From Leucoraja erinacea (lineage: Eukaryota): a stretch of DNA of 64,000 nt. The notes under the pieces were generated by a model. That model was not told the DNA's origin. It did not search any database and saw nothing but the letters and a program-made list of their open reading frames with translations. The position numbers and the translations under genes are program-made. Location of the stretch: NCBI RefSeq assembly GCF_028641065.1, contig NC_073385.1, forward strand, positions 19,654,001 to 19,718,000. Reading direction: 5' to 3'. Positions 8,321 to 64,000 of this stretch are shown here, piece after piece. Every line of letters begins with the position of its first letter. The first letter of the stretch is position 1.

Positions 8321-8809
8321 CTGGGAAAATAATGAAGACATATTTAATTAAGACAGGTTTTAAATTATAAAGCATTTTATCGGGATGCATCACAGCATGG
8401 TTTGGGAACAGCTCCATCCATGACCGCAAGGAATTGCAGAGAACTTGTGACATGGCTGAGATGATCACACAAACCAACCTCCCTACCATTGACTCATTTT
8501 TTTGCATTCAGTCTACAATGAAACTGGTCACCTTCCAAAAACTTCTACATTCCACCATTTTCTGTCAGAAACAGACCCTTCTGCCCACTGAGACCACGTC
8601 ACTGATCGCCTGTTAAATACTGTAGAACACTAAAGCACAGGAACAGGCACTCGTAGTCATGTTCGAGCCCGGGTCGTTGTAAGGCAGCAATTCTACGGCT
8701 GCGCCACTGTGCCTCCCGATTACTGATTAAATGTTTTCTGGAACTAACAAAGAAAACTGATGAAGGCAGGGCAATAAACAGTAAACTACTTCAAGAAGTG
8801 AAGCGCTAC

Positions 8810-13034: not shown

Positions 13035-14230
13035 TTGACTTCATCAGTATCACAACTAATTTCCATCCTGCACTCAAATTCACGGACCATCTCCGACATC
13101 TCCCAACCGTTTCTGGATCTCACCGTCTCCATCACAGGAAACAGACTATTGACCGACATGTACTACAAACCTACTGACTCCCATAGCTATCTTGACTGCA
13201 CTTCTTCCCACCCTGCTTCCTGTAAAGACTCTATCCCTAAGTCCCAATTCCTCCATCGATGCCGCATCTGCGTCCAGGATGATGTGTTCAATACCAGGGC
13301 ATCGGAGATGTCCACATTCTTTAGGAAACGGGAGTACCCCTATTCCATTATAGATAAGGTTCTCTCTAGGAACTCCTCGATATCCTGCAGCTCCGCTCTT
13401 ACTCCCCCTCCCCCTATTCGTAACAAGGACAGAGTCCCACTAGTCCTCACCTTCCACCCCATCAGCCATTGCTCCAACATTTTTGCCACCGCCAACGGGA
13501 TCCCGCTACTGGCTACATCTTCCCATCTCCACCCCTTTCTGCTTTCCGCAGACCGTTCCCTCCGAAACTCCCTGGTCAACTCATCCCTTCCTACCCAAAC
13601 CACCCCCTCCCCAGGTACTTTCCCCTGTCCCTGTACCTCCCCCCTCAACTCCATCCAAGGACTCAAACAGTCTTTCCAGATGAGGCAGAGGTTCACTTGC
13701 ATCTCCTCCAACCTCATCTACTGTATCCGCTGTTCCAGGTGTCAACTTCTCTACATCGGCGAGACCAAGCAAAGGCTCAGTGATCGTTTCACTGAACATC
13801 TCCACTCAGTCCGTCTTAACCTACCTGATCTCCCGGTGGCTCAGCACTTTAACTCCTACTCCCATTCCCAATCTGATCTTTCTGTCCTGGGCCTCCTCCA
13901 TTGTCAGATTGCGGCCCAGCGCAAATTGGAGGAACAGCACCTCATATTTCTCTTGGGAAGTTTACACTCCAGCGGTATGAACATTGACTTCTCTAATTTT
14001 AGATAGCCCTTGCTTTCTCTCTCCATCCCATCCCCCTTCCCAGTTTTCCTACTAGTCTTACTGTCTCCGACTACATTATATCTTTGTCCCGCCCCCTCCC
14101 GACATCAATCTGAAGATGGGTCCCGACTCGGTCCCGCCCATCCCGATGGGTCCCGCCCATTCCTTCTCTCCAGAGATGCTGGCTCACCCACTAGGTTACT
14201 CCAGCATTTTGTGATACCCTTCTTCAGTAT
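13035..14230 (+). mobile_element. Penelope-like retroelement fragment (RT thumb plus GIY-YIG endonuclease)
   Basis: FLDLTV..TDMYYKPTDSHSYL, FTCISSNLIYCIRCSRCQLLYIGETKQRLSDRFTEH, C-terminal GMN. Confidence 0.9.
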
Positions 14231-26496: not shown

Positions 26497-26673
26497 CGAG
26501 GTCCTGTCGCACTTTTTGATGTGGCTGGACAGATGATGGTAGCAGAGGTCCTATTACACATTCTGGGTGTGGCTGAAGTTCTATCACATGTTGGTGTGGC
26601 TGGCCAGATGATTGTTGCTGAGGTCCTATTGACCTTTCTTGGTGTGAAAGGTCAGATGGTGGTTGCTGAGGTC
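26497..26673 (-). repeat. Degenerate 33-48 bp tandem repeat spanning the ZBTB1 stop codon
   Basis: About four units GACCTCAGCAAC..CATCTG..CACACCAA..TAG; the first unit encodes the last residues of ZBTB1. Confidence 0.7.
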
Positions 26674-28464
26674 CTTCTTGTGCTTGAACTTGTCCCCACA
26701 GAAGCTGCAGGTGTGCAGGTGCAGGTCCATGTGCCTCTGCAGCTGCTGGCTGCCCCCCAGCACCTGAAAGCAGACGTCGCAGACCACCTGGCCGGCGGAC
26801 AGATGCGAGACCAGGTGGCGCAGATGGTCCTGCTTGCGGTAGGTGCCCTGGCCGCAGCTGGGGCAGACATAGCGGGCCACGCCACGGTGCATGTCGAGGT
26901 GCAGCCGCAGGAGGCGTTCCCGCAGGAAGTTCTTGCCGCAGATGTGACAGGTGAACTCCTTCTCGCGGGTGTGTGTGGCATGGTGCTCCCGCAGGTGGCA
27001 CCGTTGGAAGAAGGCCTTACCGCACAGCTGGCAGACGTGCTTGCGATGGGAATTGCGTAGGGGCGGGCCCGGAGGCCCGGCCTGGGGCAGGAGGCAGGCG
27101 GACATGTGTTCGGCCCAGGCCCCTTCCTCCTCGAAGGCCAGCGTGCACCCAGGGCAGCGGAAGGCCATGCCTGCCCTGTGCTGGCGCATGTGCTCCTCCA
27201 GTTGGCGCCGTCTGCGGAAGCCGACCCCGCACACGTGGCAGGAGAAGAGGCCCGAGGCCTGACCCGCCTGCCCGTCACCCAAGCAATGCTCTGCATGCTC
27301 CTGCATGCGGCCCCCCTTTACCAGGATGCGGCCACACTTACCGCAGGCACATACGCTCTCTATGTGGCGGGACACGTAGTGGTCAGCCCGTTGGCTCTCG
27401 GGCAAAGCCACACCACACAGCTCACAGGCTGGGCCTAGCGACCCGTCACCGGCCTCTGTCTCCGTCTCCTCCTTCAGGCCTTCAACTTCCTCTCCTCCCT
27501 CCTCCTCCTCCTCCTCCTCGTCCTCTGTCCAGCCCAGCTGACGGCCGCAGGCTTCATCCTCGTCACCCCCGGCAATGGCCGCCTCCTCTTCCTCGTGCAC
27601 CTCCACCACCATCAGGTCGCCCAGCCCCGTGGCAGCCGTGTCCTCAGGTTCCGTCTTGACCACAGGCCTGGCTGGGCCCTCTACCTGGCTCCCTGTATCC
27701 GTGGTGACGGGCCGGGCCTCCCCTGGCAAGGCCATGCAGCTGCCGCAGGTCAGCGAGTGCTCGTCCAGCAAACGCTCGCAGCTGAAGACGAAGCCGCAGC
27801 GGTCGCAGGTGTAACGCCGGCCAAAGCGCCGGCCCTTCATCCCTCCGCTGCCATTGCGGCCTTGCTTGCGGGTAGGCAGCCTGCCCGGGGCCTGGTTCAC
27901 CTCCAGCTCCGGGCCCACCTCACTGCTAGGTCTTAGCTCGGCCTCTCCCTCCACTAGCACGGCAGCTACCGCTGCCTCTGTCGCCACTACCCCTCCTCCC
28001 TTCACCGGGCCTCGCATCCTCACTCCAAACAGCATGGGTCCCTGGGCCGGGCCCGAGGGCCGGGGAGGAGGGGATGAGGAGGAGGAGGGGGCCCCGGCCT
28101 CCCGCAGCTCCTCCAGGCTGCGCGGCACGTAGTAGAGCTGCAGGAAGGACATGGCGGCGCGGAGCTGCTGGAAGTCGGAGGGCTGGCCCATCACACGGCC
28201 CAGGTACATCAGCTGCAGGATCAGGTCAAAGGAGTCGGCGCTCACCTCGGCCTCGTTCAGGCTGAGCTGGGCCGGGGCAGCCTGCGCCTGCTGCTGCTGC
28301 CCGATGAAGAGCATGCGGAAATAGGAGCTGCAGGCCGTCAGCACCGCCCGGTGGGCCCGGAAGTAGATGTCGCCGATCACCACGCAACAGTCGCACAGGA
28401 AGCCCCACTCGCGCTGGCTGTTCAGCTGCTGCAGCACATACTCACTGTGGCTGGGCCGAGACAT
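26626..28464 (-). CDS. ZBTB1: Zinc finger and BTB domain protein 1, single coding exon, 612 aa
   Basis: MSRPSHSEYVLQQLNSQREWGFLCDCC, CDRCGFVFSCERLLDEH, CACGKCGRILVKG and terminal fingers SHLSAG..CFQV..HMDLHL match recalled ZBTB1; acceptor ctctgcAG at 28509-28510. Confidence 0.92.
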   Translation of the reverse strand: MSRPSHSEYVLQQLNSQREWGFLCDCCVVIGDIYFRAHRAVLTACSSYFRMLFIGQQQQAQAAPAQLSLNEAEVSADSFDLILQLMYLGRVMGQPSDFQQLRAAMSFLQLYYVPRSLEELREAGAPSSSSSPPPRPSGPAQGPMLFGVRMRGPVKGGGVVATEAAVAAVLVEGEAELRPSSEVGPELEVNQAPGRLPTRKQGRNGSGGMKGRRFGRRYTCDRCGFVFSCERLLDEHSLTCGSCMALPGEARPVTTDTGSQVEGPARPVVKTEPEDTAATGLGDLMVVEVHEEEEAAIAGGDEDEACGRQLGWTEDEEEEEEEGGEEVEGLKEETETEAGDGSLGPACELCGVALPESQRADHYVSRHIESVCACGKCGRILVKGGRMQEHAEHCLGDGQAGQASGLFSCHVCGVGFRRRRQLEEHMRQHRAGMAFRCPGCTLAFEEEGAWAEHMSACLLPQAGPPGPPLRNSHRKHVCQLCGKAFFQRCHLREHHATHTREKEFTCHICGKNFLRERLLRLHLDMHRGVARYVCPSCGQGTYRKQDHLRHLVSHLSAGQVVCDVCFQVLGGSQQLQRHMDLHLHTCSFCGDKFKHKKDLSNHHLTFHTKKGQ

Positions 28465-28588
28465 CCTGCACCAGGCCAGGCCGGGCCGGCCAGACTGGGC
28501 CACAGGCTCTGCAGAGGGAGATACACGGGTCAGTGCACTGCAGACACATACAAAGTTCGACAAAAGACTTTCATAAGTGTGACTTTAA

Positions 28589-46986: not shown

Positions 46987-47159
46987 ATGGACGTGGCCAA
47001 TCACAGCGTGGTGCTGCTGCAGCAGCTGAACGTGCAGCGGGAGTTTGGCTTCCTGTGTGACTGCACCGTGGCCGTGGGAGACATCCATTTCAAGGCCCAC
47101 CGGGCCGTGCTGGCTGCCTTCTCCAACTACTTCAAGATGATCTTCATCCATCAGTCTAG
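46987..47159 (+). CDS. ZBTB25: ZBTB25 coding exon 1 (N-terminal BTB)
   Basis: [57 protein letters not shown]; acceptor at 46976-77; donor AG|GTACAT; phase 2. Confidence 0.92.
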
Positions 47160-48755
47160 GTACATGGCATCCTCACCCCCTTCCTCACTCACTCTCCGCT
47201 GGTCGGCTGCTCTGGAAGATCAGGAAGAGCTAATGAATTGGACACATAAGATAGACACAAAATGCTGGAGCAACTCAGCGGGACAGGCAGCATCTCTGGA
47301 GAGAAGGAATGGGTGAAGTTTTGGTTCGAGACCCTTCTTTAGATTGAGAGTCAGGGGAGAGGGAGACATATAGATATGGTAGGGTAAGGTGTGAAAGCAC
47401 AGATCAAAGAGGACAATGATAAAGAAATAAAGATTGGTACATTGTATGCCTTGTTGTCACCTTCCCCATAGCTAACAATCAGTAATATTTCATCAGGTGG
47501 AAAATGAAACTAGTCAGAGAACTAGGATGGGGGAGGGACAGAGAGACAGAGAGAGGGAAAGCAAGGGTCACAAAGTTAGAGAAATCAATATCAAACCGAT
47601 CGGGTGTAAGCTGCCCAAGCAAAATATGTGGTTCCTCCAAATTGTATAGGCCTCACTCTGACATTGGAGTAGGCCCAGGAGGGAAAGGTCAGTATGGGAG
47701 GGGGAGTTTAGTGTTTAGAAATTGGACATATAATTTGGAGTAGTGTGCAGTTCTGGTCGCTCCAGTACAGGACGAATGTGGAGGCTTTGGTGAGGTTGCA
47801 GGGGAGGTTAAACAGACTGGTGTATGTTTATTATAAGGAGGAGGAGCCATCTTGGGGAGCGGCTGCTAACCAGCAGCCGTCCGTTTACTTCGCTTTTTTT
47901 AACAAAGTTTTTAGTAAGTCCACTGTTTCGTCCGTTGGAGAAATTGACTTTTTAATGTGGGGGATAGGGGGCAATTTTACTCCTAGGTCCCTACCTGGTT
48001 GGTGAGGCAGCTTTTTCTCCGGGCTGCCCGTCGACCCATGCTCATGGCCTACCAGCGGGCTTGGAGCGCCGTTTCCTGGCGGGGACCGCCCAGCACCTCG
48101 GCCTCGGTGGCGGCGCAGGCGATGCCTTGCCTGGGTCGCGGCGTTGGATCGACGCGCTGGAGCTCCGGTGAGCTGTGTCCGCCGTGTTCGACACCTCCAG
48201 GCTGCGGGTCTGCGGCGCCGATTTCAACATCGGGAGCCTGGGAGCTCCAGGCCGGCGCGGCCTTGTCGGCTTCGGAAGCCGCGGTCTGCAGCTAGGAAGC
48301 GGCCGTTCCAGGTGGCCCAGCCGCTGAGAGGACTCCCGACGTCGGGGCAAGATCACCCTGTGAGAACGGCCAGGAGCATCGGGCCTCCGTAGAGGCAATT
48401 GCGGTGGCCTCAATAGGCCTGACTTTGGGTGAACTTGGGGTTGGGAACTGGACATTGTGCCTTCCCCCACAGTGGTATCCATTGTGGGGGGATGATTTTT
48501 TTTGTCTGTAAGGTAATCCTGTTAGTCTTTGTCCAAGATGGCTGTCGGAAGGGAGAGTGGACGCTGGCGCGCTTTAGGTGCCGCTGCTCTCTTTTCACAT
48601 TTGGTTTTTGATTTTTTGTTTTTGGACTGAATTCTGTTTTTAATTTGTGTTTCTGTGATGTCTTTATTACTTATTTTATTCTGATTGTATGTTTTTTATT
48701 TCTGTTAATCTCTGTAAGGTGTCCTTGAGATTTCTGAAAGGCGCCCAAAAATAAA

Positions 48756-48789
<34 letters not shown>

Positions 48790-49240
48790 GTTACGTGTAC
48801 CGAGGTAAAGTGGAATTTTGTTTTGAAAGCTATCCAATTCAATACAAACTACCCAACATGGATACAATCAAGCCAAAATCGCACAATAGGGAGAGCAAAG
48901 GGGAAGATACAGAGTGCAGAATATAGTTCCCTGCATTGTAGCACATCAGTTCCACAGACAAAGTCCAATGTCCGCAATGGGGTAGAGGTGAATCGGACAG
49001 TACCCTAGCTTATCGAAGGACCGTTCAGAAGCCTGATAACAGGGGAAGAAGCTGTTCCTGAGTCGTGGTAGTGCGCGCTTTCAAGGTGTTGTGCGCGCTT
49101 TCAATGTCTGCTGGACGGGAGCGGGGAGGAGGGGTGGGACAAGTGCACACTTTCATGCATGTATAGGGAGTTGGCCGAAGGGCCTGTTTGCGCGCTGTGC
49201 GGTTCTCTAACCCGTCTGTTCTGACCCCTGTTCCCTACAG

Positions 49241-50067
49241 CGACTACATCAAGGTGCAGCCAGTGGACATCCAGCCGGACATCTTCAGCTACCTGCTGCA
49301 CCTGATGTACACGGGCAAGGGGCCGAAGCAGCCGGTTGATCCCAGCCGGCTGGAGGAGGGCATCCGCTTCCTGCACGCCTACAACCTGGTGCATGACCCG
49401 GGCCACGGGGGGCCACTCTTCGGTCCCCACCACGAGGTGCTGCCTCTGCAGTCGCCCAACCTGTACGGCATACAGATCTCCGGCTCGCAGAAGGTGCAGG
49501 TGGCACAGAGCGCAGGCCGGAGCGGGCCGCCTGGCCTGGGCTTGGAGCAGCCGGGCCAGCTGCCCTCCGGCCCAGTGGCCAACATTCCCGAGCACCGCTA
49601 CGCCAGGCCGCCCATCACCCAGGAGGTGGCGACGCTCGGGGAGGACAGCAGCCCAGGAGCGACGCCGGCCGCCGCCCGCGGACTACAAGTCCCCGGCCTC
49701 GGCTTCAAGAGGGGCAAGTCCCACAAACACTACTCCTGCCACTACTGTGGGGAGAGGTTTGCTGCCAGGGGAAGCTTGCGGGACCACCTGTACTCCCATG
49801 CCAGCGGCACCCTGCCCTCAGCCACCCCACCGGCAGCCGCCCAGACCAGGGGGCTCGGAGACCACCCCCAAGAAGCCGAGAAAGCCGAGGGGCTGCTGGG
49901 GGAGGAAGTACAGCTACCAGCCGCTAACCAGCACGAGACCAACAGCCTGGACGAGCATCCTCCCGTCGGACTGACCGTCACCGTCGGAGCCTATGGGGGC
50001 GACGCCATTGAGAGCGGTAGCTTCGGCACGGCCAAGAGGAGGAAGTTCGCCTGCTCCGTTTGTGGCC
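49241..50067 (+). CDS. ZBTB25: ZBTB25 coding exon 2 (rest of BTB, one C2H2 finger, first half of a second finger)
   Basis: Acceptor cctacAG; DIQPDIFSYLLHLMYTGKGPKQ..RLEEGIRFLH..NLYGIQIS; CHYCGERF..L..HLYSH; ends KFACSVCG at donor C|GTGAGT. Confidence 0.88.
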
Positions 50068-50144
50068 GTGAGTATCCGACACCGGTGGGTGCTGGAGGTG
50101 GGGAAGGAACGGCCTGGCAATTGTGGGCTGGGCCGGCAAAGTAT

Positions 50145-51604
50145 TGGTTAAAGTGCACATTGTCAGATTTTAATAAAGGCCATTTTTATACATCTTGGTT
50201 TCACCATGTAGAAATTACAGCAGTGTTTATACATAGTCCCCTCCATTTCAGGGCACCATTATGCTTGGGACACAGCAATGTCATGTAAATGAAAGAAATA
50301 GTCATGTTTAGTATTTTGTTGTATCCTTTGCATGCAATGACTGCTTGAAGTCTGCAATTCATGGACATCACCAGTTGCTGGGTGTCCTCTCTGGTGATGC
50401 TCTGCCAGGCCTGTATTGCAGCCATCTTTAGCTTATGCTTGTTTTAGGGGCTAGTCCCCCTTCAGTTTTCTCTTCAGCATGCTCAATTGGGTTCAGATCG
50501 GGTGGTTGACTTGGCCACTCAAGAATTTACCATTTTTTAGCTTTGAAAAACTCCTTTGTTGCTTTAGCAGTATGTTTGGGATCATTGTCTTGCTGTAGAA
50601 TGAACTGCTGGCCAATGAGTTTTGAGGCATTTGTTTGAACTTGAGCAGATAGGATGCGTCTATACACGTCAGAATTCATTGTGCTACTACCATCAGCAGT
50701 TGTATCATCAATGAAGATAAGTGAGCCAGTACCTTCAGCAACGATACATGCCCAGGCCATAACACCCCCCACCACCGTGTTTCACAGATGAGGTGGTATG
50801 CTTTGTATCTTGGGCAGTTCCTTCTCTCCTCCACACTTTGCTCATGCCGTCACACTGATATAAGTTAATCTTTATCTCATCTGTCCACAAGGCTTTTTCC
50901 CAGGACTGTGGTTGCTCTTTTAAGTACTTCTTGGCAAACCGTTACCTGGCCATCCTAGTTTTGCAGCTAACCAGTGGTTTACATGCAGTGTAGCCTCTGT
51001 ATTTCTGTTCATGAAGTCTTCTGCGGACAGTGGTCTTTGAAAAGCCACACCTGACTCCTGAAGAGTGTTTCTGATCTGTCGGACAGGTATTTGGGGAATT
51101 TTCTTTATTATAGAGAGAATTCTTCCGTCATCAGCTGCAGAAGTCTTCCCTGGACTGCCAGTCCCTTTGCGATTAGTAAGCTCACCAGTGCTCTCTTTCT
51201 TCTTAATGATGTTCCAAACAGTTGATTTTGGTAAGCCTAATTTATTCTTGTTTCTCAGTCTCATAATGGCTTAATTGACTTTCATTGGCACAGCTTTGGT
51301 GCTCATGTTGATAAACAGCAATAAAAGTTTCCAAAGATGATGGAAAGACTGGAGGAAAGACTAGGTGCTGAGAGCTCTCTTATACCTGCATTAAGGGGGC
51401 AATTACCTGAGCAATTACAAACACCTGTGAAGCCATGTGTCCCAAACATTATGCTGCCCTGAAATGGGGGGGCTATGTATAAACACAGCTGTAATTTCTA
51501 CATAGTGAAACCAAAATGTAAAAATACCCTTTAATAAAATCTGACAATGTGCACTTTAACCACATGTGATTTTTTAATTGTTCTAAACATTATGGAGGGC
51601 ACTG
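50145..51604 (-). mobile_element. Tc1-family transposon (IR/DR type) with decayed transposase
   Basis: Long inverted repeats (50145-50273 versus about 51437-51562); right end ..GGAGGGCACTG|TA; fragments LGLPKSTVWNIIKK, GGVMAWACI, FILQQDNDPKHTAK; outer part of the left TIR is missing. Confidence 0.9.
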
Positions 51605-53247
51605 TATATATTGTATCTATAGTATTTCTACTATACATGTTTATAATGGAGCCGCCCACAGAGTACAGATACAGGCTATAGGGAATAATCAGGGTGGGAC
51701 AAGTTTTTGAATATGGTGGCTGCTTTTCTGAGGCAGAGTGAAGTGTAAGTGGAGACAGTGGTGGGGAGTCTGGTCTGTGTGATGGACTGGGTTACGTCCA
51801 AAACTGTCTGCAATTCCTTATGGTCGTGGGATGAACTTGTTCCCAAACCAAGCTGTGATTTTTCCCGACAGGATTCTTTCCATGGAGCATCTATGGAAAT
51901 TGGTCAAAGTTGTTGGAGACATACTGAACTTTCTTTGAATGGCCACCGTTGAGTTGATGAGGGGAATGAGTAGGGTGACAACAGAGCATACAATCAGGAA
52001 CATTTAATCAGGTGGACTGTAAAACAAGTCAAAAGAACTAGGATGGGGGAGGGATGGAGAGGGAAGTAAGGGTTTCGTGAAGTTAAAAAAGTCAATATTC
52101 ATACTATGAATATAAGTTGCCCAAGTGAAATATGAGGTGCTGTTCCCCCAATTTGCATTGGTCTTCACTCTGACAATGGAGGAGGCCCAGGATAGAAAGT
52201 TCAGCGTGGGAATGGGAGGGGGAGGTAAAGTGTTTAGCAACCGGGAGATCGGCTAGGGGGAGTTAAATATTCCCATCAATTCCCACACTGACCTTTCAGT
52301 CCTGGGCCTCCTCCATTGTCAGAGTGAGGCCCAGCGCAAATTGGGGGAGCAGCACCTCAGATTTCACTTGGGCAGCTTACACCCCAGCGGTATGAACATT
52401 GACTTCTCTAACTTCAAGGGTCTGAGCTGTAGGGAGAGGTTGGACAAGTTTATTGAAAAAAAATACACAAAATGGGAGAAGTATTTCCGTCGGTTGTTGA
52501 ATTCATTGAAATTTAAAAAATATATTGTAAACTTGTCCAAATTATTTGTTATAATTAGTTGGTAGATTTATAGAATCCATTGGTTTTTGTTCTAATTGTA
52601 GGCTTATGGAATGTATTAATTGTTATAATGTATTGTAGACTTATATAAGTTATTGAATGCTTGTTTATAATGTATTGCACATAGAATGTTTGTGTATCAT
52701 TTATTGAATGAACGAAACGTTACACCTCACATGATGAGTCAGTGCGACCCAAGGTATGCAAAGATGGGCCATGTAAGGTGCACAGACTTATAGAAGTTAT
52801 TGTTGCGTGCTAATCAGTCACCAGAAAGACTATATTATTACAATCGAGCCGTCCACAGAGTGTAGATACACGATAAAGGAATAACATTTAGTGCAAAGTA
52901 AAGCAAGTCAAGTCTGATCAACGATAATCTGAGGGTCCCCAATGACGTAGATAGTAGTTCAACACTGCTCTCCAGTTGTGATAGAATGGTTCAGTTTTCT
53001 GATAACAGCCGGGAAGAAACTCTCCCTAAATCTGGAGGTGTGCGTTTTTACACATTTTGTACCTCTTGCCCGATGGGAGAGGGGAGAAGAGGGGGTGACC
53101 GGGGTGAGACTGGTCCTTGATTATGCTGAGGCAGTGTGAGGTGTAGATGGAGTCGATGGATGGGATGTTGGTTTGAGATGGTCTGGGCTGCGTCCACAAC
53201 TCTCTGCAATAATAACTAACCCCTGTTCTGTCTTTCTCTGTCTGCAG

Positions 53248-55688
53248 ACACGGCGGAGCCAGAGCCGGAGGCAGGTGCCCTGTCCCCGCCGCCAGCACCA
53301 GCGGCCACCGCCGGCCCAGAGGAGCTGCCCTCGCGGCGGCAGCAGCAGCTGGCAGCGGCCGAGCTGGAGGCTGCTTTCCGCGCCGTCTTCGCCAACTACG
53401 AGTCAGCGCGCGTGCATGCCCACTACAAGTGCGTGCGTGGCGGGTGCGCGCTCCCCGTCACGGGAAGTGCGGTCACGGTGACTGCGCCGGGCCGGCGTGG
53501 TGGCGGCGACCGCTTCGTGCACCGCTGGCTGTGGGAGCGGGAACTGACGTACTGCGAGCGCACGGGTGTGTACTGGCTGTTGTACGAGGAGGGCCGCGGC
53601 ATGTACTGCTACCTGTGTCGGCGCCACGACGCCCACAACCGGCAGAACAAGAGCAAGGTGTTCAATGGTACGCCGGCTGTGCGCTACAAGAAGGCAGCGC
53701 TGCAGGCCCACGCCGAGTCGCAGCAGCATGGAGCTGCGGTCCGCGCCGAGCTGTCGGGCCGCCTGTCCGCACGCCAACTGGCCCGGAGCGGACAGCAGGA
53801 AGCGGCCTCGTTGCGCGCCCTTTTCCAGGCCGCCTATTGGCTGGCGAGGGAGGGGCTGCCAACTGCAAAGCTACGCCCCGCGCTGCGGTTGCTAGGCGCC
53901 ACGCCCACGCACTTCCGGCGCGCCGCTACGCTGTGCCGCGTCTTCCGCGCGCTGGGCTGCGCCGTGCACAGGCGCGTGCTGCTGGGCCTCCGGCGTGCCG
54001 CTCACTTCGGGCTGCTGTGCGAGAGGAGCGACGCGGAGGTCGGGGCCGGCGTTGACTCCGCGCTGCTCGGCTTCGTGCAGTACGTGGATCCCGACTCCAA
54101 GGAGGTGACGTGGAGCTTACTCTTCGCCGAGGTAGGCCGCACCAGAGCCTGGGACTCGGGTGAGGAGGTGGCCGGGGCGGTGAGCCGCGCCCTGGGCCGC
54201 GCGGAGCTGGAGGGCAGCCGCCTGGCCTGGCTGGTGGCCGAGCAGGCGGGCGAGGAGGAGCCGGCGGCGCGGCTGCAGGAGGGCTGGCCTGGGCTGCTGG
54301 GGATGGCGTGGCCGGGGCGGCGGCTGCTGCTGGCGGGGACTGGGCGCGGGGGAGCAGGGGCGTGCGGGCCGTTGCTCCGGCTCCAGGCCTGGCTGTACCA
54401 GCTGTGGGAGCTGCTCGAACGTTCGCCCGCCCTGGCCGAGGCTTACCTGGCCGCCCGCATGCCCGGAGCAGAGGCCGAGGTCTCGCCGCCCAGCCGCCTC
54501 CTCCGGCCAGCGCTGCTCCGCCGGCTGCGACGGACCTGCCGCCGGTGCCGCCAGTCGGTCGAGGCGTCGGTGGAGGGTGCGTACGAGGATCTGCCGGCGC
54601 TGCTGCGGGCACTGCGGGCTCAGGGCGGGGTGGAGGCGGCGGCCTGCGGCCTCTGGGCCCAGCTGAGCTCCCCGCGGGCCGCGGGAGGCCTCTACATCCT
54701 GCGGGAGGTGGCGGCGGCGCTTCTCGGCCTGACACGGGCCCTGCGCCGGGCCAGGGGGCTACAGGCGCCGCCCGACGCCGAGCTGCGGATCGCCCTGCAG
54801 CGGCTGCGGGAAGCGGCAGAGTCCGGGGCGCCGCTGAGCCGCCTGCGGGCCGACCTGGAGCCCGGCGGCCGCCTGTCAGCTTGCGGCCTGCCGCCGCTCG
54901 ACGCCCGCGACCAGGCCGAGCTGCGCAGCCTGCTGGACGCCTACACGGCCGGGCTGGCGGCCGAGCTGCGACGCCGCTTCCTCGGGCCTGAGGCCGGGGC
55001 CTCGCCTCTGGCTGCCCTGGCCATCTTCAACCCGCTGCTGGTGCCCGAGCCAGGCTCCCCCGAGGCAGCGGCAGCCCACGGGCAGGCCCAGGTGGCCGCC
55101 CTGGCCTCCCGCTTTCACCCCGGGGAGGCAGGCGCCGAGGCCCGGCTGCAGGCTGAGTGGGCCCGGCTCCAGCCCGAGCTGCGGGCCTGGCGCTCCAGCC
55201 TGCCTGCCTCGGCGCTGGCCGAGCCCGGGCCCACGGCTGTCGAGTGGAGCCTCCGCCGCCTGCTGCGCCTCCGTTCCTACCCGGGGCTGGCGGCTGTGGC
55301 TGAGGCGGCGCTGGCGGCACCCGTGGGCCCGGCGTGGGACGAGCGGGCGGCTGGAGCCTTGCGTAGGGTGGAGGCCCGGCTGAGGGAAGGCCGCTGCCGG
55401 GACGCTGGGCTGCTCGACAGCCTCCTGCACATCAGCGTGAACGGCCCCGAGCTGGGCACGACCGAGTGCTCGCAGTTGCTGGAGGAAGCGGCGCACACGT
55501 TCCTGCAGCAGTGGCGGCCCGGAGCTGGGGCCTCGCCCCAGCACAAGCCCCACCTGGCATCGGTCAAAGCCGAGGAAGTGGCCGAGAGCTCGGAACAAGA
55601 GCTGGAGCAGGAGCTGGAGCAGACGGGGGGAGCTCTGCAGCACCAAGCCGACATTGACAGCGACTCGGAGAACAGTCTATGCGACTAG
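53248..55688 (+). CDS. hAT-transposase-derived exon (ZNF862/C17orf113-like), predicted terminal coding exon of ZBTB25
   Basis: Strong pyrimidine-tract acceptor at 53246-47; uninterrupted frame; TTF-type zinc finger (WL.Y..GMYCYLCRRH..H..S..H); hAT dimerisation-like C-terminus (YPGLAAVAEAALAAPVGPAWDERAAGALRRV..LDSLLHISVNGP). Confidence 0.8.
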
Positions 55689-57687
55689 GCCCCGGGTTTG
55701 GCCCTTCCCTCAGGCTTTACTCTGGGCTGGGAGTCAGGACAGGTCTGGTGGGAGGGAAGGTCAGTTGGATGCTCTAAAGTGGATCAGAATGGTTGTTCAT
55801 CAAGAGAGACACAAGGAACTCCAGTTGCTGGTTTACCCAACAGGAAGGACATAAAGTGGTGCAGTTACTCAGCGGGTCAGGAAGCATCGCTGGAGAACAT
55901 GGGTCAGAAACTTCACCTATTCACGTTCTTCAGAGATCGTTCATTAAAACTGGAACGTGATGGGTTGAGTTTCACAGTATTTTCACAGCCTCACTATTCC
56001 CCTGCAGAGTTGGAACGGGTAGGAACTGAGCTGGTCCACAGAGTTATGGCAGCTCTATCCCAGAGCTGCATTGATTGATTAAAAGATACATCAAGGGAAC
56101 AGGCCACTGAGTCCACGCCGACCATTGATCACCCATCACACTAGTTTTATGCTATTCCACAGTCTCTTCCACTCCTTCACTAGGGGGCAATTGACAGAGG
56201 GCCAATTAGCTTACAAAGCCGCACATCTTTGGGATGCGGGAAGAAGCCGGACCACCCGGAATAAACTCACTTGGCCACAGGGAGAACGTGCAAACTCCAC
56301 ACACAGGCAGCAGCCTAGGTCAGGATCGAACCTGGGTCTCCGGTGTTGGGAGGCAGTGGCTCTACCAGCTGCACCACTGTGCCACCCTATTTCACCGGAA
56401 TCGTAGAAACATTGCGAGAGGTGGTGCAGTGGTAGAGTTGCTGCTATGCAGCGCCGGAGACCCGGGTTCGATCCCGACCACGGGCGCTGTCAGTACGGAG
56501 TTTGCACGTTCTCCCCGTGACTTGCGTGGATTTTCTTCGTGATCTTTGGTTTCCTCCCACACTACAAAGACGTGCAGGTTTGTTGGTTAATTGGCTTAGT
56601 AAATGTAAAAATTGTCCCTAGTGGGTGTAGGATAGTGTTAATGTGCGGGGATCGCTGGTCGGCGGGAGCCCGGTGGGCCGAAGGGCCTATTTCCATGCTG
56701 TATCTCTAAACTAAACCGAAGTGCAGGAAGCAAACTAGTCCCGATCACCATCTCTACTGCTGGAGGGAAGGAGGCTGAGAGGTGACCCATGAAATCTATA
56801 TCATTATGAGGGGGGTAGATACAGTGGTTAGTTTAAAAAACAACCTCCATCTACCCTAGGCCATGGTCAAACCCTTTGCCAGTTGGGGTTGGTATCAGGA
56901 CAGGTATAGACTCAGAACTGATGGGTTTTGGGCATAGGTTTTGCAGGTCTATCCCTGAGCTTAATCTCCTTAAGTAAAAAAGAATGACTTCACCAGAACT
57001 GGAGTGTCACGGGCCATGTTTAAGAGTAACGGCCACAATCCTCCCCACGCACAGGCCACAGCTCCATGGCCAGTGGAAGTGAGCGTTCCCGAGAGCTGGT
57101 GTCTTGAGATAGTGTGACGAGGGGCAAAGTCTTGCACAGTAAAACACAAAGTGCCGGGACAGCACTGGTGCAGCAGTAGAGCTGCCGCCAACCGTGCCAG
57201 ACACCCTGGCTCGATCCTGTGTGTGTGTGTGTTTGCACAATCTCCCTGTGGTTTCACCATGGGTTTCCTCCGGCTGCTCCTGCTTCCTCTCACATCCAAA
57301 GACAGGCCACTTTATGGGTTAATTGGCCTGGCATGCAGGGAGCGGATGAGAAAGTGGGATAACGTAGAACACGTGATCAACGGTCAGTGTGGGCTTGGTG
57401 CTCCAAAGTGCCTGTTTGCATGCTACATTTTTTCAAGCTCTTAAAAAACCGAGTGAGGCAGGCAGCATCTGCAGAGGGAATGGACATGCAATGTTTTGGG
57501 TTGGGGCCCTTCAGTCTAGTGTGGTGGGAGAGTGTGACAGAAGCAAAGCCTTACTCAGGGTTCAATCTTTGTAGCTCATGTCCAGTCACAGGAAACCACG
57601 CATATTGTGTGTTTAGAGTATAAGTGTTCATCATTTTTTTACGCTATCGTGATTTTTAATTTTTAATCTATGTATTTTGAAAGTGAA

Positions 57688-57725
57688 AATAAAAGTTGTT
57701 TTTCTAGAGTTTTAATGTTTTTATT
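57688..57725. terminator. Convergent polyadenylation signals
   Basis: AATAAA on + at 57688-57693 followed by T/GT-rich sequence; AATAAA on - at 57720-57725. Confidence 0.4.
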
Positions 57726-57726
57726 A

Positions 57727-58930
57727 TTACTGCTTTCTGAGGGCAATGTTGTGAGCAGCTGTAAGATGATGTTGCTGCCTGGTGCTTTGGAGACAGTTTA
57801 TTGCAATAGATGAGGTTTGTGTGATGCATTTTGGGGGGGCTGATGGTTTCAACGGGAAGTCTTGCCCCCCCCCGCCCCGTTCTCCAGCTCGGATTCTGGA
57901 AGTTCCCTGCCACCCGCGGATGCTGCCTCCACTGCCCAGCGGGGAAGGCAGGAGGTCACCCGGCAGTGCAAGGCTGCCTTGGAGGTCCATCCCATCCCTC
58001 CTTCTCTCCCTGCCCCAGCTGAGATTCCAGGGCCGCCCCATTTTCCCAGCAGACGGCAGGAGGGTGGGTGAGGAGGTCGCGCCCTGTGGTGCCACCCTCT
58101 GCTCCTTAACTTGGTGGGGCATAACCTTGCCCGGTTTACCCAGGTTGGACCTCATCTCCTGCAGGATGTTTCACTAAACATCTCACCTTCTCCATTCTCT
58201 ACTTTTGCCAATGGAGTTGGTTCTAACTCGAGGAACTCATGCTAGGGTAGGTGATCTAATTCTACTGGGGTAGGACCTCTCCCATCATTGGTCCCTCGGT
58301 CCAAGTGGAGATGGTTTGGTCTCTCCTTGTGAAGGATCCACGTGTCCGGCTGGAGCTCCCTCTCCGGTCTTCCCCGGCCAAGGCGAAACCACCTTTCCTT
58401 AGGATTGGCTACACCTCCCATTTTAGAGCTCCCATTCCCAGTCTGCCCTGTTCTACTTCCCTTGGCTCAGCTGGGACAGTTCTCTCAATGTCCCCTCTCC
58501 ATCTCATGGAGCTCAGCCTGTGAATGTCTTGGTTCACCTGTGTCTCCGTCTCTCAGGAGCAGAGTTACTGAGTGTCCTGGAGGTTCTACACTTTTCTTGG
58601 GTGCGGACTCCGGGTAGGGGAAGGGTCCTGAGGAACACACTGACCCCCGCTCCCTGTCCTTTCCTCTCGCCAGCTCCCACCACCAAAAACTTCCACGTCC
58701 TTCCTAGCAAAGCTTCTCCATTCCTTCTTAGGCACCACCAAGTCTCCGAAAGATGTCCACCATCTGCCCGAAGGCTTCCTCCTCGGCTTGCCCTGCCCAA
58801 GGATCTGCCCTGCACTGGTATTCCGCCCTCCTCCCGTCTCCAGGGCCTCGGCCCCGACTGCCCCCTGGGTGATCCATGCTTGCCTCTCACGCTCAGAGTG
58901 GCAATGTTGTTGAAGCAAGAAACCAATCTT
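57727..58930 (-). pseudogene. Possible decayed AKAP5-like gene
   Basis: WSK-like motif WTSFGDLVVPKK (58724-58759) and PKA-RII-helix-like CITQTSSIAINCLQSTRQQ (57772-57828) in separate ORFs; syntenic position and strand of AKAP5. Confidence 0.35.
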
Positions 58931-60114
58931 CTGTATTAAGTTACGCTACAAAACTGCCCCATTGGGAGCAAGGACAGTCTACCAACTGAAGGGGAGTGGA
59001 GACTCATAGAGACAGCACAGACACAGGCCCTTTGGCCCACGTTTCCCATGCTGACCAAGTTGGCATTCTGGGCTTGTCACATTTACCTGCCCATCTATCT
59101 GTCCAAATGGCTTTTAGAAGTAATTGTAATTGCTTCTAGAACTTCCACTGGCAGCACGTTTCAGATACTGATTACCCTCTGTGTGGAAAAATTAGACACA
59201 AGGAACAGCGGATGCTGGTTTACAAAAACAAAATGCTGGAGTTTAGTGTGTCAGACAGCATCCCTGGAGATTGTGGATAGGTGACATTTCAGGTCAGGCA
59301 CAGTCTGAAGGGTCCTAACCCAAAACGTCACCTATCCTCGTTACAGGAGGAATTATTTAGCCAGTGGGTGGTGAATCTGTGGAATTCATTGCCACAAACA
59401 CCTGTGGAGGCCAAGATATTGGATATTTTTAAAGCAGAGATTGATAGATTCTTAATTTGTACGGGTGCCAAAGTTTATGGGGAGAAGGCAGGAGAATGGG
59501 GTTGAGGGGGAAAGATAGATCAGCCATGATTGAATGGCAGAATCGACTTAATGGCTTAATTCTGCTCATGTCACACAGCTATGTGGCGCCCACGTTGGTT
59601 TTGCATTAAGCCTGTCACCGCCAGCAGCCTCACCAGAAGGTCAATAACAACTCCATGGTCAGACGCACTAATTGCCTGATCTGCACACGGGTTATGATGG
59701 GTGAGAATGTAGGTAAAGGGGGCTTCTGGGATAAATGTGACAAGGTGTCTGGTTCAGCTAAGTGTTGTTTGTTCTTTGCTTTCTGTCGTGGGTTTCAGAA
59801 GATCCTAGTTACGCCAGCACTTTGTGTCTTTTTCTGGGTGGGAAAAGTTGCGCCCAGGGTCCCTCTTAAATCTCTCCCTTAAGTCTCACCTTAAGCCTGT
59901 GCCCTCTAGTTTTAGAATACTCTACCACTGGGGAAAAAGACTGAGCGTTCACTTTATCCATATCCTTCATTATTTCCCTTCCTTTTCCCACTCCTCCCTC
60001 CACTCTACCCCCTCCTCCTTTGTGCTCCCTAGATTGTACCCAGAACAGGGCGTGCTGCTCAGCCCCGAGGCACAAGCACAGCGGTAGAAGGGGTGCAACA
60101 AAAACTGGCGAGAG

Positions 60115-60351
60115 CTAGGAAATCGAGCTTTTATTCTGTTAGAAAACTAGAACATTCAGCCGAGCATTTCCCCCACAAAATACACAGATTGTCAGCTTGT
60201 GAATCAGCAGTTCTGTCAGGGCGGTGGATTGTTGGAATGAAAAGCAATTCCTGGTATCATGCACCATTTGTAATCTTAGCACCGTCACAGGCCGTGAAAT
60301 GTATCCCCATTGTCATCCAGACTGCTGCCAGTCTCTCCAATCTTCTGGACA
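60115..60351 (-). other. MTHFD1: Predicted non-coding terminal exon (3' UTR) of MTHFD1
   Basis: Acceptor ctgtctgtcttgcAG at 60352-53; AATAAA on - at 60130-60135; the upstream coding exon has a donor just after its stop codon. Confidence 0.55.
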
Positions 60352-60674
60352 CTGCAAGACAGACAGAAAATGCAAGTAGTAGACACAAGGCACTGAAAAA
60401 GACAACGTGCAGGACAGTGTAAAAAATCACAAGGGCAAACGCACTCTTGCCCAGAGTAGGGAAAAGGAGCACAAGAGAACTAAGTTTAAGGTGATTTCTT
60501 TTTTTTTACTTGCACACACAAAGACTGTGGAGTAAGTCATTGGGAGAGGCAGCATCTCTGGAGAACATGGATAGGTGACATTTCAGGTCAGGACCCTTCA
60601 GACAGATTGTGGCCGGAGTGAGGGGGAGAAAAGGGGCAGGACAAACCCTGGCAAGTGATAGGTGGGGTACAGGT

Positions 60675-60705
<31 letters not shown>

Positions 60706-61428
60706 GATAGGCAGATGGTTGCATAAAGACTAGAGATGAAGATAATAAGTGTATGATCATTAGGACGGGCGAAATAGGTGCAAGACCAGGTGGGGTGCAG
60801 GGAAGTGGGGGAAAAGGCACGGCAGGGTTTAGTATCTAAAATTAGAGAATTCAATGATCATGCCTTTAGGTTGTAAGCTACCCAAGCGGTGTGTAAGGTG
60901 CTGTTTCTCCAGTTTGCATGTGGTCTAACTCTGGTAATGGAGGCGGCCCAGGACAGAAAGGTTAGTGTGGGAACGGGAATGGCAAGTGGGAGATCCAGCA
61001 GGCCTTGGCAGTCTGTGCGCAAGTCTTTGGTGGAACGGTGGTCGAGTCTTTGCTTAGGCTCGCTGATGCACAGGAGGCCACGTCAGCAACACCAGATGCA
61101 GTAGATGACGATAGAGGAAACACTTCTGTCTCACCTGGTCCCTGGATGGAGACAAGGAAGGAAGTGTAGGGACAGGTGTTACAACTGCAGCAAGTCATGA
61201 GAGGCATAGATAGGGTAGATAGAACTTAGACACCAAATGCTGGAGTATCTCAGCAGGTCAGGCTGCATCTCTGGAGAAAAAGAATAGGTGACGTTTCGGG
61301 TCAGAACCTTCCCCTCCCAAAGAAATGTCAAAGACCAGAAGCTGAAGGGCCTTGATGCTGTGCTGTATTCCTCAATGTTCTTATAGACCTGTGAGGGGGG
61401 TTTGCTTACCTTTCGTCAAGGTGTGTGG

Positions 61429-61623
<195 letters not shown>

Positions 61624-61929
61624 TCAATAAAACTTGTCGCACACATCTCCATGAACCTTGTGACCTTGCTTCATTCTGATTATCATCTCACTGGTGCCTT
61701 CACAACAGTGGCACAGGGGTAGAGTTGCTGCCTTACAGCGCAGACAACGGGTGCTGTCTGTATGGAGTTTGCACGTCCTCCCTGTGACCATGAGGGTTTT
61801 CCCTGGGTGTAGGTTAATTGGCTCTAGTGTATAGGATAGAACTCACGTACAGGGTAATCATTGGTTGGCGTGGACTGGGTGGGGCAAAGGGATGGGTGAT
61901 GTTTCGGGTCGAGACCCTTCTTCAGACTG

Positions 61930-63700
61930 TCCTATCCATGTACCTGTCTAACTGTTTCTTAAATGTTGCAATAGTACCGGCCTCAACTACCTCCTCTGGC
62001 AGCTTGTTCCATACACCCACCAACCTTTGCAAAAAAGTTACTCAGATTCCTATTACATCTTTTCCCCTTCACCTTGAACCTATGTCCTCTGGTCCTCGAT
62101 TCCCCTACTCTGGGCGCCAGACTCCGCATCTACCCCATCTATTCCTCTCATGATTTTGTACACACTTCTATAAGATCACCCCTCATCCACCTGCACTCCA
62201 AGGAATAGAGTCCCAGCCTACTCAACCTCTCCCTGTAGCTCACACCCTCTAGTCCTGGCAACATCCTCGTAAATCTTTTCTGAACCAGAACTGAACACAA
62301 TATTCTAAATGCGATCTCACCAACGTCTTATACAACTGCAACGTGACCTCCCAACTTCTATACCCAATACTCTGACTGATGGAGGCCAATGGGCCAAAAG
62401 CCTTTATGACCACCTTATCTACCTGCAATTCGACCTTCAAGGAACCATCCACCTGTACTCCTAGATCCCTCTGCTCCACAACATTACCCAGAGGCCTACC
62501 ATTTACTGTGTAGGTCCTGCCCTTGTTAGATGTCCCAAAATGCAACACCTCACACTTCTCTGTATTAAATTCCATCAACCATTCCTCAGCCCACCTGACC
62601 AATCGATCCAGATCCTGCTGCAATCGTTCACAACCATTTTCACTATCTGCAAAACCACTCACTTTTGTATCATCAGCAAACTTGCCAATGTTGCCCTGTG
62701 TGTTCTCATCCAAATCATTGATGTTGGTGACAAACAGTAAAGGGGCCCAGCACTGAACCCCGAGGTACATCACTAATCACAGGCCTCTAGTCCGAGTAGC
62801 AACCTTCTACCATTTCCCTCTGCTTCTTCCCTGAAGCCAATTTTCAATCCATTCAGCTATCTCTCTTTGGATCCAATGTGATCTAACCTTTTAGAGCAGC
62901 CTACCTTGTCAAAACTAAACTAAACTTCCAACCATGGTTAGACACACAATGCTGGAGTAACTCAGCGGGACAGACAATAGAGAATAGGTGCAGGAGTAGG
63001 CCATCACCGAGCCAGCACCGCCATTCAATGTGATCATGGTTGATCATCCACAATCAGTACCCCGTTCCTGCCTTCTCCGCATATCCCCTGACTCCGCTAT
63101 CTTTAGGAGCTCCATCCAACATGTCATTTGCTTTCTTCACTGCCTGCTTTACCTGCAAGTTTACTTTCAGTGACTGATGGACAAGGCCCCCCAGGTCCGT
63201 TGTACTTCCCCTTTTCCCAACTTGACACCATTCAGATAATAATCTGCCTTCCTGTTTTTGCCACCAGTGGATAACCTCACATTTATCCACATTAAACTGC
63301 ATCTGCCATGCATAAGCCCACTCCCCCAACCTGTCCAAGTCACCCTGCATCCTCATAGCATCCTCCTCACAGTTCACACTGCCACCCAGCTTTGTGTCAT
63401 CTGCAAATTTGCTAATGTTACTTTTAATCCCTTCATCTAAATCATTAATGTATATTGTAAATAGCTGCGGTCCCAGCACCGTTCCATGCGGTACCCCACC
63501 AGTCACTGCCTGCCATTCTGAAAGGGACCCGTTAATGCCTACTCTTTGTTTACTGTCTGCAAACCAATTTTCTATCCATGTCAGCACTCTACCCCCAATA
63601 TCATGTGTTCTAATTTGTCCCACTAATCTCGTATGTGGGACCTTATCAAATGCTTTCTGTAGTCCAGGCAGACTACATCCACTGGTTCTCCCTTGTCCAT
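61930..63700 (-). mobile_element. Two CR1 LINE RT fragments in an MTHFD1 intron
   Basis: ORFs 62249-62773 and 63054-63623, both with INDLDE..KFADDTK. Confidence 0.88.
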
Positions 63701-64000
63701 TTTCCCAGGCAGCATCTCTGGATAGAAAGAATAGGTGACGTTTCGGGTCAAGACCCTTCTTCAGACTGAGAGTCAGGAGAGAGGGAGACTAGAGATTTAG
63801 AAGGGTGAGGTGTGAAAACGACAGATCAAAGCAGATGATGATAAGGAAATGTAGACTGGTTCATTGTTAGCTGAGGGGAAGGTGACAATGGCATACAACC
63901 AGTAATATTTAATCAGGAGGACCATGGTTATGTAACTGGATGAAATGCAGAGACACCAAATGAAGCCAGGTATTGAATACAAACATCACTCAAAGCCAGC

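Follow-up and report, generated by a model that had tools for sequence, protein, structure and literature searches.

The stretch of DNA analysed here (the window) comprises 64,000 nucleotides of the Leucoraja erinacea genome (contig NC_073385.1, positions 19,654,001 to 19,718,000 of the forward strand) and contains a three-exon gene in which the BTB zinc-finger gene ZBTB25 continues into a long exon that appears to derive from a hAT transposase. Coding exon 1 (46987..47159, plus strand) carries the start codon, an ATG at 46987, and the first half of the BTB domain (Pfam BTB, E 1.2e-13), and ends at 47159 as ...CAGTCTAG|GTACAT, with the donor AG|GTACAT. Coding exon 2 (49241..50067, plus strand) is preceded by CCCTACAG and begins at 49241; it encodes the remaining part of the BTB domain, a linker, one full C2H2 finger and half of a second (C-x2-C-G), and stops at 50067 within ...TGTGGCC|GTGAGT, its terminal residues being KFACSVCG followed by one base of the next codon. 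Intron 2 (50068..53247, plus strand, 3180 nt) runs from GTGAGT through repeat-bearing sequence to a pyrimidine tract and a CAG whose last base is 53247. The transposase-derived coding exon 3 (53248..55688, plus strand) then supplies 812 codons in frame from 53250 and a stop codon at 55686-55688, so that the coding sequence sums to 173+827+2441 = 3441 nt, or 1147 codons with the stop counted.

Coding sequence and transcripts

Two properties of the sequence tie exon 2 to exon 3. Reading exon 2 through into the intron gives CGREYPTPVG..., with no His pair to complete finger 2. At the other end, an in-frame TAA at 53217 closes the exon 3 frame upstream, and the first in-frame ATG, at 53601, lies within a zinc-finger Cys cluster; since exon 3 residues 38-117, which are conserved in all groups from skate to caecilian, precede this ATG, an upstream exon is required. 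A preliminary description of the stretch had proposed the same three-exon model from the letters alone, and its exon coordinates, exon lengths, splice sites, phase and stop-free frame, as well as the truncated finger 2 and the closed frame of exon 3, were all recovered on re-examination. Because exon 3 has a G+C content of 70-79%, its open frame was checked as a possible by-product of composition: the coding frame holds the terminal stop only, the other five frames hold 7-13 stops each with longest open runs of 146-366 codons, and the open frame exceeds chance. Homology searches were run exon by exon and not with the joined protein. Orthology with ZBTB25 is indicated by tblastn of the coelacanth and lungfish proteins, which matched exon 1 at 73-75% identity and exon 2 at about 35%, and the search with exon 2 returned ZBTB25 from many vertebrates.

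Sequencing data placed on 49150-55149 comprised two contig sets assigned to RNA by an automatic guess (X1 and X3) and two runs of raw oligo-dT RNA-seq reads (X23 and X24), for which about 5% of the reads were examined. In X1 a contig of 422 nt matched 49839-50067 and then 53248-53440, skipping 3180 bases with GT..AG ends, and thus corresponds exactly to the 50067|53248 junction anticipated in the preliminary description, in one of the four runs. Depth in X1 and X3 was about 4-11 and alike on exons 2 and 3, fell to zero in the unique intron bins 51750-51949 and 52550-52749, and rose to hundreds to thousands on the repeats of intron 2; both sets behave like RNA. Host and transposase sequence are therefore joined in frame in one transcript, on the thin support of the splice phase and a single contig.

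Origin of exon 3 and fate of its catalytic residues

In Pfam, the only profile above its cut-off on exon 3 was zf-C17orf113 (PF25431, 'C17orf113 probable zinc finger'; 34.3 bits against 29.5, residues 109-169); C17orf113 itself might conceivably be a tetrapod copy of this exon in a new location. A C-terminal ..W-x-E-R..L-R-R motif is nevertheless recognisable in the skate protein, and the same region in its relatives matches Dimer_Tnp_hAT. These relatives were collected with a profile built from three chondrichthyan sequences and searched against 1.84 billion representative proteins, which yielded 4067 matches at E<=1e-3 and 183 at E<=1e-30, the best unfused proteins reaching E 1e-165. Ten relatives scanned with Pfam carried zf-C17orf113 in every case (10/10), Dimer_Tnp_hAT in 6/10 and DUF4371 in 4/10. 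The named unfused relatives come from molluscs, amphioxus and one coral, and the nearest unfused cluster has 13 members spread over many contigs, as expected of a mobile hAT family. Unfused proteins with zf-C17orf113, DUF4371 and Dimer_Tnp_hAT from molluscs, amphioxus and corals align over their full length and share the Cys/His module and the order of motifs (31% identity over 732 residues between one of them and protein P0179); their source names are 'zinc finger protein 862-like', 'KIAA1586-like' and 'HAT C-terminal dimerisation domain-containing'. They differ from the fused proteins in being multi-copy, in lacking a BTB part and in retaining all catalytic motifs (11/11). Separately, a 774-residue protein of Mytilus galloprovincialis (P0050) has two HMG boxes ahead of zf-C17orf113 and DUF4371 and may be an independent host-transposase fusion.

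Structural comparison points to the same origin. With the AlphaFold model of exon 3 as the query, the top 12 rows in Foldseek were all Hermes hAT transposase (probability 0.99-1.0; PDB 2bw3, 4d1q, 8sjd, 6dwz and others), and VIA placed Hermes at Z 11.1-12.2 over 364-385 residues with the next family at Z 7.8; the best alignment to Hermes has Z 12.2 over 364 residues and a Foldseek probability of 1.0. Both have an RNase H-like core that a helical insertion domain divides in two. The predicted hAT-type core of the skate protein (53877..55394, plus strand, model residues about 210-715) consists of an RNase H-like fold, into which an all-helical segment is inserted, and of helices at the C-terminus. 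The skate protein differs from Hermes in that sequence identity is just 9-14%, other residues occupy its two Asp positions and that of the RW-motif Trp of unfused relatives, and there are no terminal inverted repeats. The catalytic positions discussed below would be equivalent to catalytic residues of Hermes itself. On these models, and on the Pfam domains of the relatives, a hAT origin of exon 3 is well supported, and together with the X1 contig they bear out the preliminary reading of exon 3 as a domesticated hAT transposase joined in phase to ZBTB25.

Motifs were compared in an alignment of 18 fused domains and 11 unfused relatives. The most conserved block (53361..53756, plus strand) holds the N-terminal Cys/His clusters and contains the zf-C17orf113 match; its residues H56/H58, C61, C66 and H91, and C120, C123, H154 and H160, occupy invariant alignment columns. 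The CxxC and Hx5H of this module are kept in 18/18 fused proteins, and the first Cys of the CxxC in 10/11 unfused relatives. A model of the N-terminal 200 residues reached a predicted local distance difference test score (pLDDT) of 86.6, and Foldseek returned nothing for it at E<=0.001. A TetR-like three-helix piece at model residues 145-200 was considered and set aside, its best VIA Z of 5.8 being within the noise range.

The catalytic positions have had a different history. All five catalytic and core motifs are kept in 11/11 unfused relatives, whereas the Trp of the RW motif, present in 11/11 of these, is found in 0/18 fused proteins. The first catalytic Asp position (54021..54023, plus strand) is Glu in the window (E258); it is Asp in 11/11 unfused relatives and, among the fused proteins, Asp in 8 shark or chimaera rows, Glu in 6 batoid rows and Gly in 4 lobe-finned or caecilian rows. 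The second, in the ..TDG.. motif (54240..54242, plus strand), is Glu (E331) in a rewritten VAEQAG; Asp is kept here in 11/11 unfused and 15/18 fused proteins, having been lost only in three skates, that of the window among them. The catalytic Glu of the ..W-x-E-R.. motif (55341..55343, plus strand) is retained in the window (E698), in 11/11 unfused relatives and in 12/17 of the fused rows that reach the position. The full set of three DDE positions survives only in seven sharks; the chimaera model, whose C-terminus is missing, has the first two. Judged from the alignment, catalytic decay is graded, with all positions kept in sharks, part of them in rays and lobe-finned lineages, and most lost in skates. 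Of the features of an active hAT transposase, the window thus has the RNase H-like fold and lacks the DDE triad and the RW motif; with both Asp positions and the RW Trp replaced, the skate protein is not an ordinary transposase. Eight differences between the window and the contigs were listed in exon 3, of which seven fall at third codon positions and six are synonymous, a small and incomplete sample that suggests purifying selection.

Distribution of the fusion and its two junctions

The protein search with exon 3 returned 13 proteins, 10 of which are models of 1141-1189 residues with both BTB and PF25431. These ten fused models come from the skates Amblyraja radiata and Rhinoraja, from the rays Pristis, Hypanus and one more, and from five sharks; exon 3 matches the C-terminal part of Amblyraja radiata LOC116977149 at 98% identity. 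A sixth shark, Pristiophorus, has a model of 1162 residues without a BTB match, which is the same gene with a divergent first exon. The model named ZBTB25 in the chimaera Callorhinchus is truncated (828 residues), and that of Scyliorhinus canicula is without the BTB part. Fused proteins are also annotated outside the cartilaginous fishes, namely coelacanth ZBTB25 isoforms X1 and X2 (1202 and 1196 residues), lungfish isoform X1 (1204 residues) and the caecilians Rhinatrema (1178 residues) and Geotrypetes (1220 residues). Exon 3 aligns to the coelacanth, lungfish and caecilian proteins, which are of ordinary composition, at 31-32% identity over about 740-840 residues. Coelacanth and lungfish have a short canonical isoform as well (P0162, 436 residues, and P0166, 443 residues, respectively). 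In all, automatic annotation predicts the fused gene in at least 17 species, under names such as 'uncharacterized protein' or 'ZBTB25 isoform X1/X2'.

Of 185 short ZBTB25-like proteins matched by exon 2, 120 were listed and 119 of these examined (one named Homo sapiens was left out). Among these 119, a transposase piece was found only in isoform X2 of the gar Lepisosteus oculatus (P0207, 456 residues), which has, in the region of residues 380-452, a 77-residue transposase remnant with E 2e-9 to coelacanth. The gar protein departs from finger 2 at ...HMYTHT|, as the coelacanth protein does, and the remnant then stops; it has the appearance of a degenerate version of the captured exon, still spliced in a ray-finned fish. 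Among the annotated proteins searched, no fused model was found in teleosts, frogs, salamanders or amniotes.

All 18 fused domains grouped, in a 44-row tree, as one clade (support of 100 in the Shimodaira-Hasegawa-like approximate likelihood ratio test, SH-aLRT) that roughly follows the species tree, with coelacanth, lungfish and caecilians on one side and, on the other, the chimaera outside sharks and batoids. Orthologous fused models across these groups, united in a single clade, argue for one capture before the split of cartilaginous and bony vertebrates followed by vertical descent, and this is the simplest reading. The two lineages diverged roughly 450 million years ago. The preliminary description had envisaged a lineage-specific chimera, a view that is contradicted by the fused models in sharks, rays, chimaera, coelacanth, lungfish and caecilians and by the gar remnant.

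The point at which the host protein gives way to the transposase differs between the two lineages. The coelacanth, lungfish and Rhinatrema proteins have a full finger 2, with the transposase part following directly after ...HMYTHT or ...HVYTHK, and in Geotrypetes the donor lies close to where the canonical tail ends. The chondrichthyan models all have their junction 16 codons earlier, directly after C-x2-C-G. The acceptor and its phase are common to all fused models, and the first exon 3 residues align with the start of the bony-vertebrate exon, which indicates that the same acceptor is used in both lineages. That the chondrichthyan donor is conserved is indicated by two short models that read into the intron as ...CGRE.... 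All three short chondrichthyan models (Narcine, Scyliorhinus torazame and Callorhinchus) are without finger 2; the two-finger pattern is present in 93/119 of the short vertebrate ZBTB25-like proteins, and the three chondrichthyan ones have one finger. The transposase part thus takes over the second half of finger 2 in cartilaginous fishes, much as the preliminary description had it. The His codon formed at the junction (C+AC), noted there, is incidental and does not belong to the finger, given that coelacanth, lungfish and one caecilian have a full finger and a junction 16 codons later. In a model of the electric ray Narcine bancroftii (P0183, 'ZBTB25-like', 460 residues) a 12-residue unit rich in Pro, Ala, Glu and Asp occurs several times over where the transposase exon begins, and the model ends in unrelated sequence; this expansion may be a real repeat or a broken model.

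No canonical ending of the gene was found downstream of exon 2 in the window. On the plus strand from 50067 to 64000, a pattern scan found no second C2H2 half-finger, and tblastn with the short and long isoforms of coelacanth and lungfish gave no match to the tail; the sole matches to the finger and tail of these isoforms were to finger 1 and, on the minus strand, to the ZBTB1-like gene. From the sequences compared here, the fusion therefore seems to be the sole product of the gene in cartilaginous fishes. The canonical ZBTB25 protein of bony vertebrates, about 430-445 residues long, shares with the skate gene the BTB domain, the linker, finger 1 and the ZBTB1-like neighbour, but has a full finger 2 and a short tail, in place of which the skate gene has 812 transposase-derived residues.

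Interpretation, alternatives and relation to known fusions

Our preferred explanation, to which we assign a probability of about 0.8, is that the gene is the skate orthologue of ZBTB25 and that its sole detectable product is a host-transposase fusion, made with an immobile, domesticated exon that was captured once before the cartilaginous/bony split and has become obligatory in cartilaginous fishes. Exons 1 and 2, which encode the BTB domain, the linker, finger 1 and an incomplete finger 2, would be spliced in phase 1 to the single large transposase exon. That exon would have been inherited vertically since its capture. In coelacanth, lungfish and caecilians it would serve as an alternative 3' exon, with donors placed after the full finger 2 and the short canonical form retained beside it; in cartilaginous fishes, where the donor lies inside finger 2, the canonical ending would be gone and the fusion obligatory. 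Conservation through this history appears to have concerned the Cys/His module at the N-terminus and the hAT fold, and not catalysis. In hAT transposases the corresponding parts bind the element ends and form multimers. By analogy, the transposase part of the skate protein would provide sequence-specific DNA binding and multimerisation, bringing the BTB domain to particular genomic sites, and in cartilaginous fishes this DNA-targeting module would stand in for the lost second finger.

Several observations weigh against this explanation. Support for the junction is thin, consisting of one contig in one run whose RNA nature was guessed: X3 has contigs on both sides of 50067|53248 and none spanning it, and in X23 and X24 exon depth was at most about 2 and no junction read was seen. 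The absence of a canonical terminal exon extends to the end of the window, about 8 kb past the stop codon. The Pfam profiles Dimer_Tnp_hAT (PF05699) and DUF4371 did not match the skate protein at E<=1, nor did Pfam hAT profiles match the shark and chimaera proteins, so that the check with Dimer_Tnp_hAT recommended in the preliminary description succeeded in the relatives only. A PDB sequence search with the three-row profile returned 0 matches at E<=10. The AlphaFold model of the whole of exon 3 is poor overall (pLDDT 56.9) and usable at about residues 240-690, and its root-mean-square deviation from Hermes is 7.6-9.2 Å. As the N-terminal domain has no clear structural relative, DNA binding is a property that we infer for it. 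In the tree, batoids nest inside sharks beside Pristiophorus and many rows are of deviant composition, which makes details of the topology unsafe. Finally, annotation elsewhere treats the transposase exon as a separate gene in Scyliorhinus canicula (821 residues, 'ZNF862-like'), in Latimeria (LOC135352544, 705 residues) and in the lungfish (isoform X2, 812 residues).

These separate models, and the fact that the junction contig was seen only once, are what one would expect if exon 3 were a domesticated gene in its own right, driven by a separate promoter, and if rare read-through or annotation chimeras accounted for the joined contig and the long models. We regard this as quite unlikely. Such a gene would have to begin behind the TAA at 53217 with no ATG before 53601, even though residues 38-117 are conserved from skate to caecilian; the acceptor and phase are common to all fused models; exon 2 of chondrichthyans otherwise ends only by a short read-through; 10 of the 13 proteins found with exon 3 are fused models; and contig depth is similar on exons 2 and 3.

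A second possibility is that a hAT element inserted recently behind ZBTB25 in skates and may still be mobile. Exon 3 is indeed a single intron-less block, like a transposase gene, and the intron before it is rich in repeats. No inverted repeats bracket 53248-55688, where only short, G+C-rich, chance-like pairs were found, and no second copy of exon 3 lies within the 64-kb window, so the signs of a transposon copy, named in the preliminary description as grounds for giving up the fusion, were not seen in the window. The orthologous fused exons of sharks, chimaera, coelacanth, lungfish and caecilians form one clade with that of the skate, both catalytic Asp residues and the RW Trp have given way to other residues, and contigs cover the exon at a depth of 5-11, whereas the true repeats of the intron reach hundreds to thousands. 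A recent insertion is accordingly very improbable.

The surroundings of the gene agree with a stable locus. Head to head with ZBTB25 lies a ZBTB1-like open reading frame (ORF; 26626-28563, minus strand, 645 residues) with a BTB domain and several C2H2 fingers, and beyond it an HSP70 ORF (6678-8507, minus strand; Pfam HSP70, E 4.5e-208). The neighbours of mammalian ZBTB25 are ZBTB1 and HSPA2, and the earlier identification of the gene as ZBTB25 is upheld by its BTB domain, its finger and these two neighbours. With its conserved neighbours, the lack of inverted repeats and a single copy in the window, the locus appears fixed, non-mobile and syntenic. At 13035-14006 (plus strand) a 323-residue ORF has a weak GIY-YIG match (E 7e-4, below the Pfam cut-off) and is perhaps the endonuclease end of a retroelement.

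Intron 2 contains other mobile sequence. At 50145-51578 (minus strand) lies a Tc1/mariner-like element with ORF fragments at 50527-50775 and 50920-51264, the latter with a weak HTH_32 match (E 3.8e-4). Reads that join 50145 and 51578 on opposite strands suggest inverted ends, and depths of hundreds to thousands in X1 and X3, with many fixed differences, point to a multi-copy expressed family. In X24, 44 reads run from 53199 back into 51838, with about 31 foreign letters at the join, and loose ends occur at 52377/52416 and 53058/53087; the joins at 51838-53199 were taken as repeat families transcribed elsewhere in the genome and not as ZBTB25 transcript.

Base composition is unusual throughout the gene, the G+C content at third codon positions being 0.83-0.87 in each of the three exons. 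In the transposase part of the skate protein Ala makes up 18% (5.5% in coelacanth) and Arg 11% (3.1% in coelacanth), with Lys, Asn and Ile at about 1% each, and batoid and skate branches are long in the tree; this looks like the outcome of strongly G+C-biased evolution of the locus in skates. That the long frame is itself a by-product of the 70-79% G+C content in a decaying transposon relic that makes no protein, as the 146-366 open codons of other frames and the excess of Ala and Arg might suggest, is hardly credible in view of the single terminal stop in 812 codons against 7-13 stops in other frames, the 31-32% identity to bony-vertebrate proteins of ordinary composition, the position of 7/8 listed differences at third codon positions, and the splicing and coverage of the exon in RNA-like contigs.

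The skate gene, read as a ZBTB25-transposase fusion, is of a known kind, that of host-transposase fusions formed through a captured exon. Cosby et al. (preprint 10.1101/2020.05.07.082677) describe tetrapod fusions in which a captured transposase forms a 3' exon joined by (alternative) splicing; tetrapod annotations were selected by Pfam transposase domains, and hAT is among the main source superfamilies. The likeness to those genes, as they are set out there, lies in a retained DNA-binding part fused to a host interaction or repressor domain. The differences are that KRAB hosts dominate that survey, 'BTB' and 'ZBTB' occurring 0 times in its main text, whereas the skate host is a BTB protein; that the Pfam transposase domains by which the survey was made, as given in that text, have no match on the skate protein; and that the ZBTB25 capture would predate tetrapods and is best kept in cartilaginous fishes. 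ZBTB11-type proteins with BTB and integrase zinc-binding domains (10.1101/2024.12.17.628972) are likewise vertebrate BTB proteins with a domain from a mobile element, but the donor there is an integrase zinc-binding domain and the host a different gene, compared with hAT and ZBTB25 in the skate. We found no description of a ZBTB25-transposase fusion in open-access papers and bioRxiv (supplements being outside this scope); the earlier suggestion that the fusion was undescribed thus holds for that literature, while RefSeq-type models of it are already in the databases.

New transcription factors are known to arise through host-transposase fusions, and most of the cases surveyed are KRAB fusions of tetrapods. 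The present case is distinctive in its BTB zinc-finger host and in a capture apparently older than the cartilaginous/bony split. One and the same locus provides an alternative isoform in coelacanth, lungfish and caecilians, a remnant in gar and an obligatory fusion in cartilaginous fishes, and is seemingly without the fusion among the annotated proteins of other groups. It also shows that old fusions escape Pfam-based surveys once their transposase domains have ceased to match the profiles. In mouse cells the ZBTB25 BTB domain heterodimerises with ZBTB2, and it does not itself bind UBN2 or GATAD2A/B (PMC8350017).

The graded loss of catalytic residues among living lineages is a further point of interest. 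Sharks keep all DDE positions after several hundred million years of domestication, which raises the possibility that their protein may still nick or cut DNA, as part of a gene that ancestrally had two isoforms, became obligatory as a fusion in cartilaginous fishes and was discarded by most tetrapods and ray-finned fishes; we consider this extension of the preferred explanation unlikely. If true, the shark protein would be a BTB-tethered nuclease or recombinase, beyond a mere DNA-binding factor. The fusion offers a concrete, testable handle on ZBTB25, a gene of little known function.

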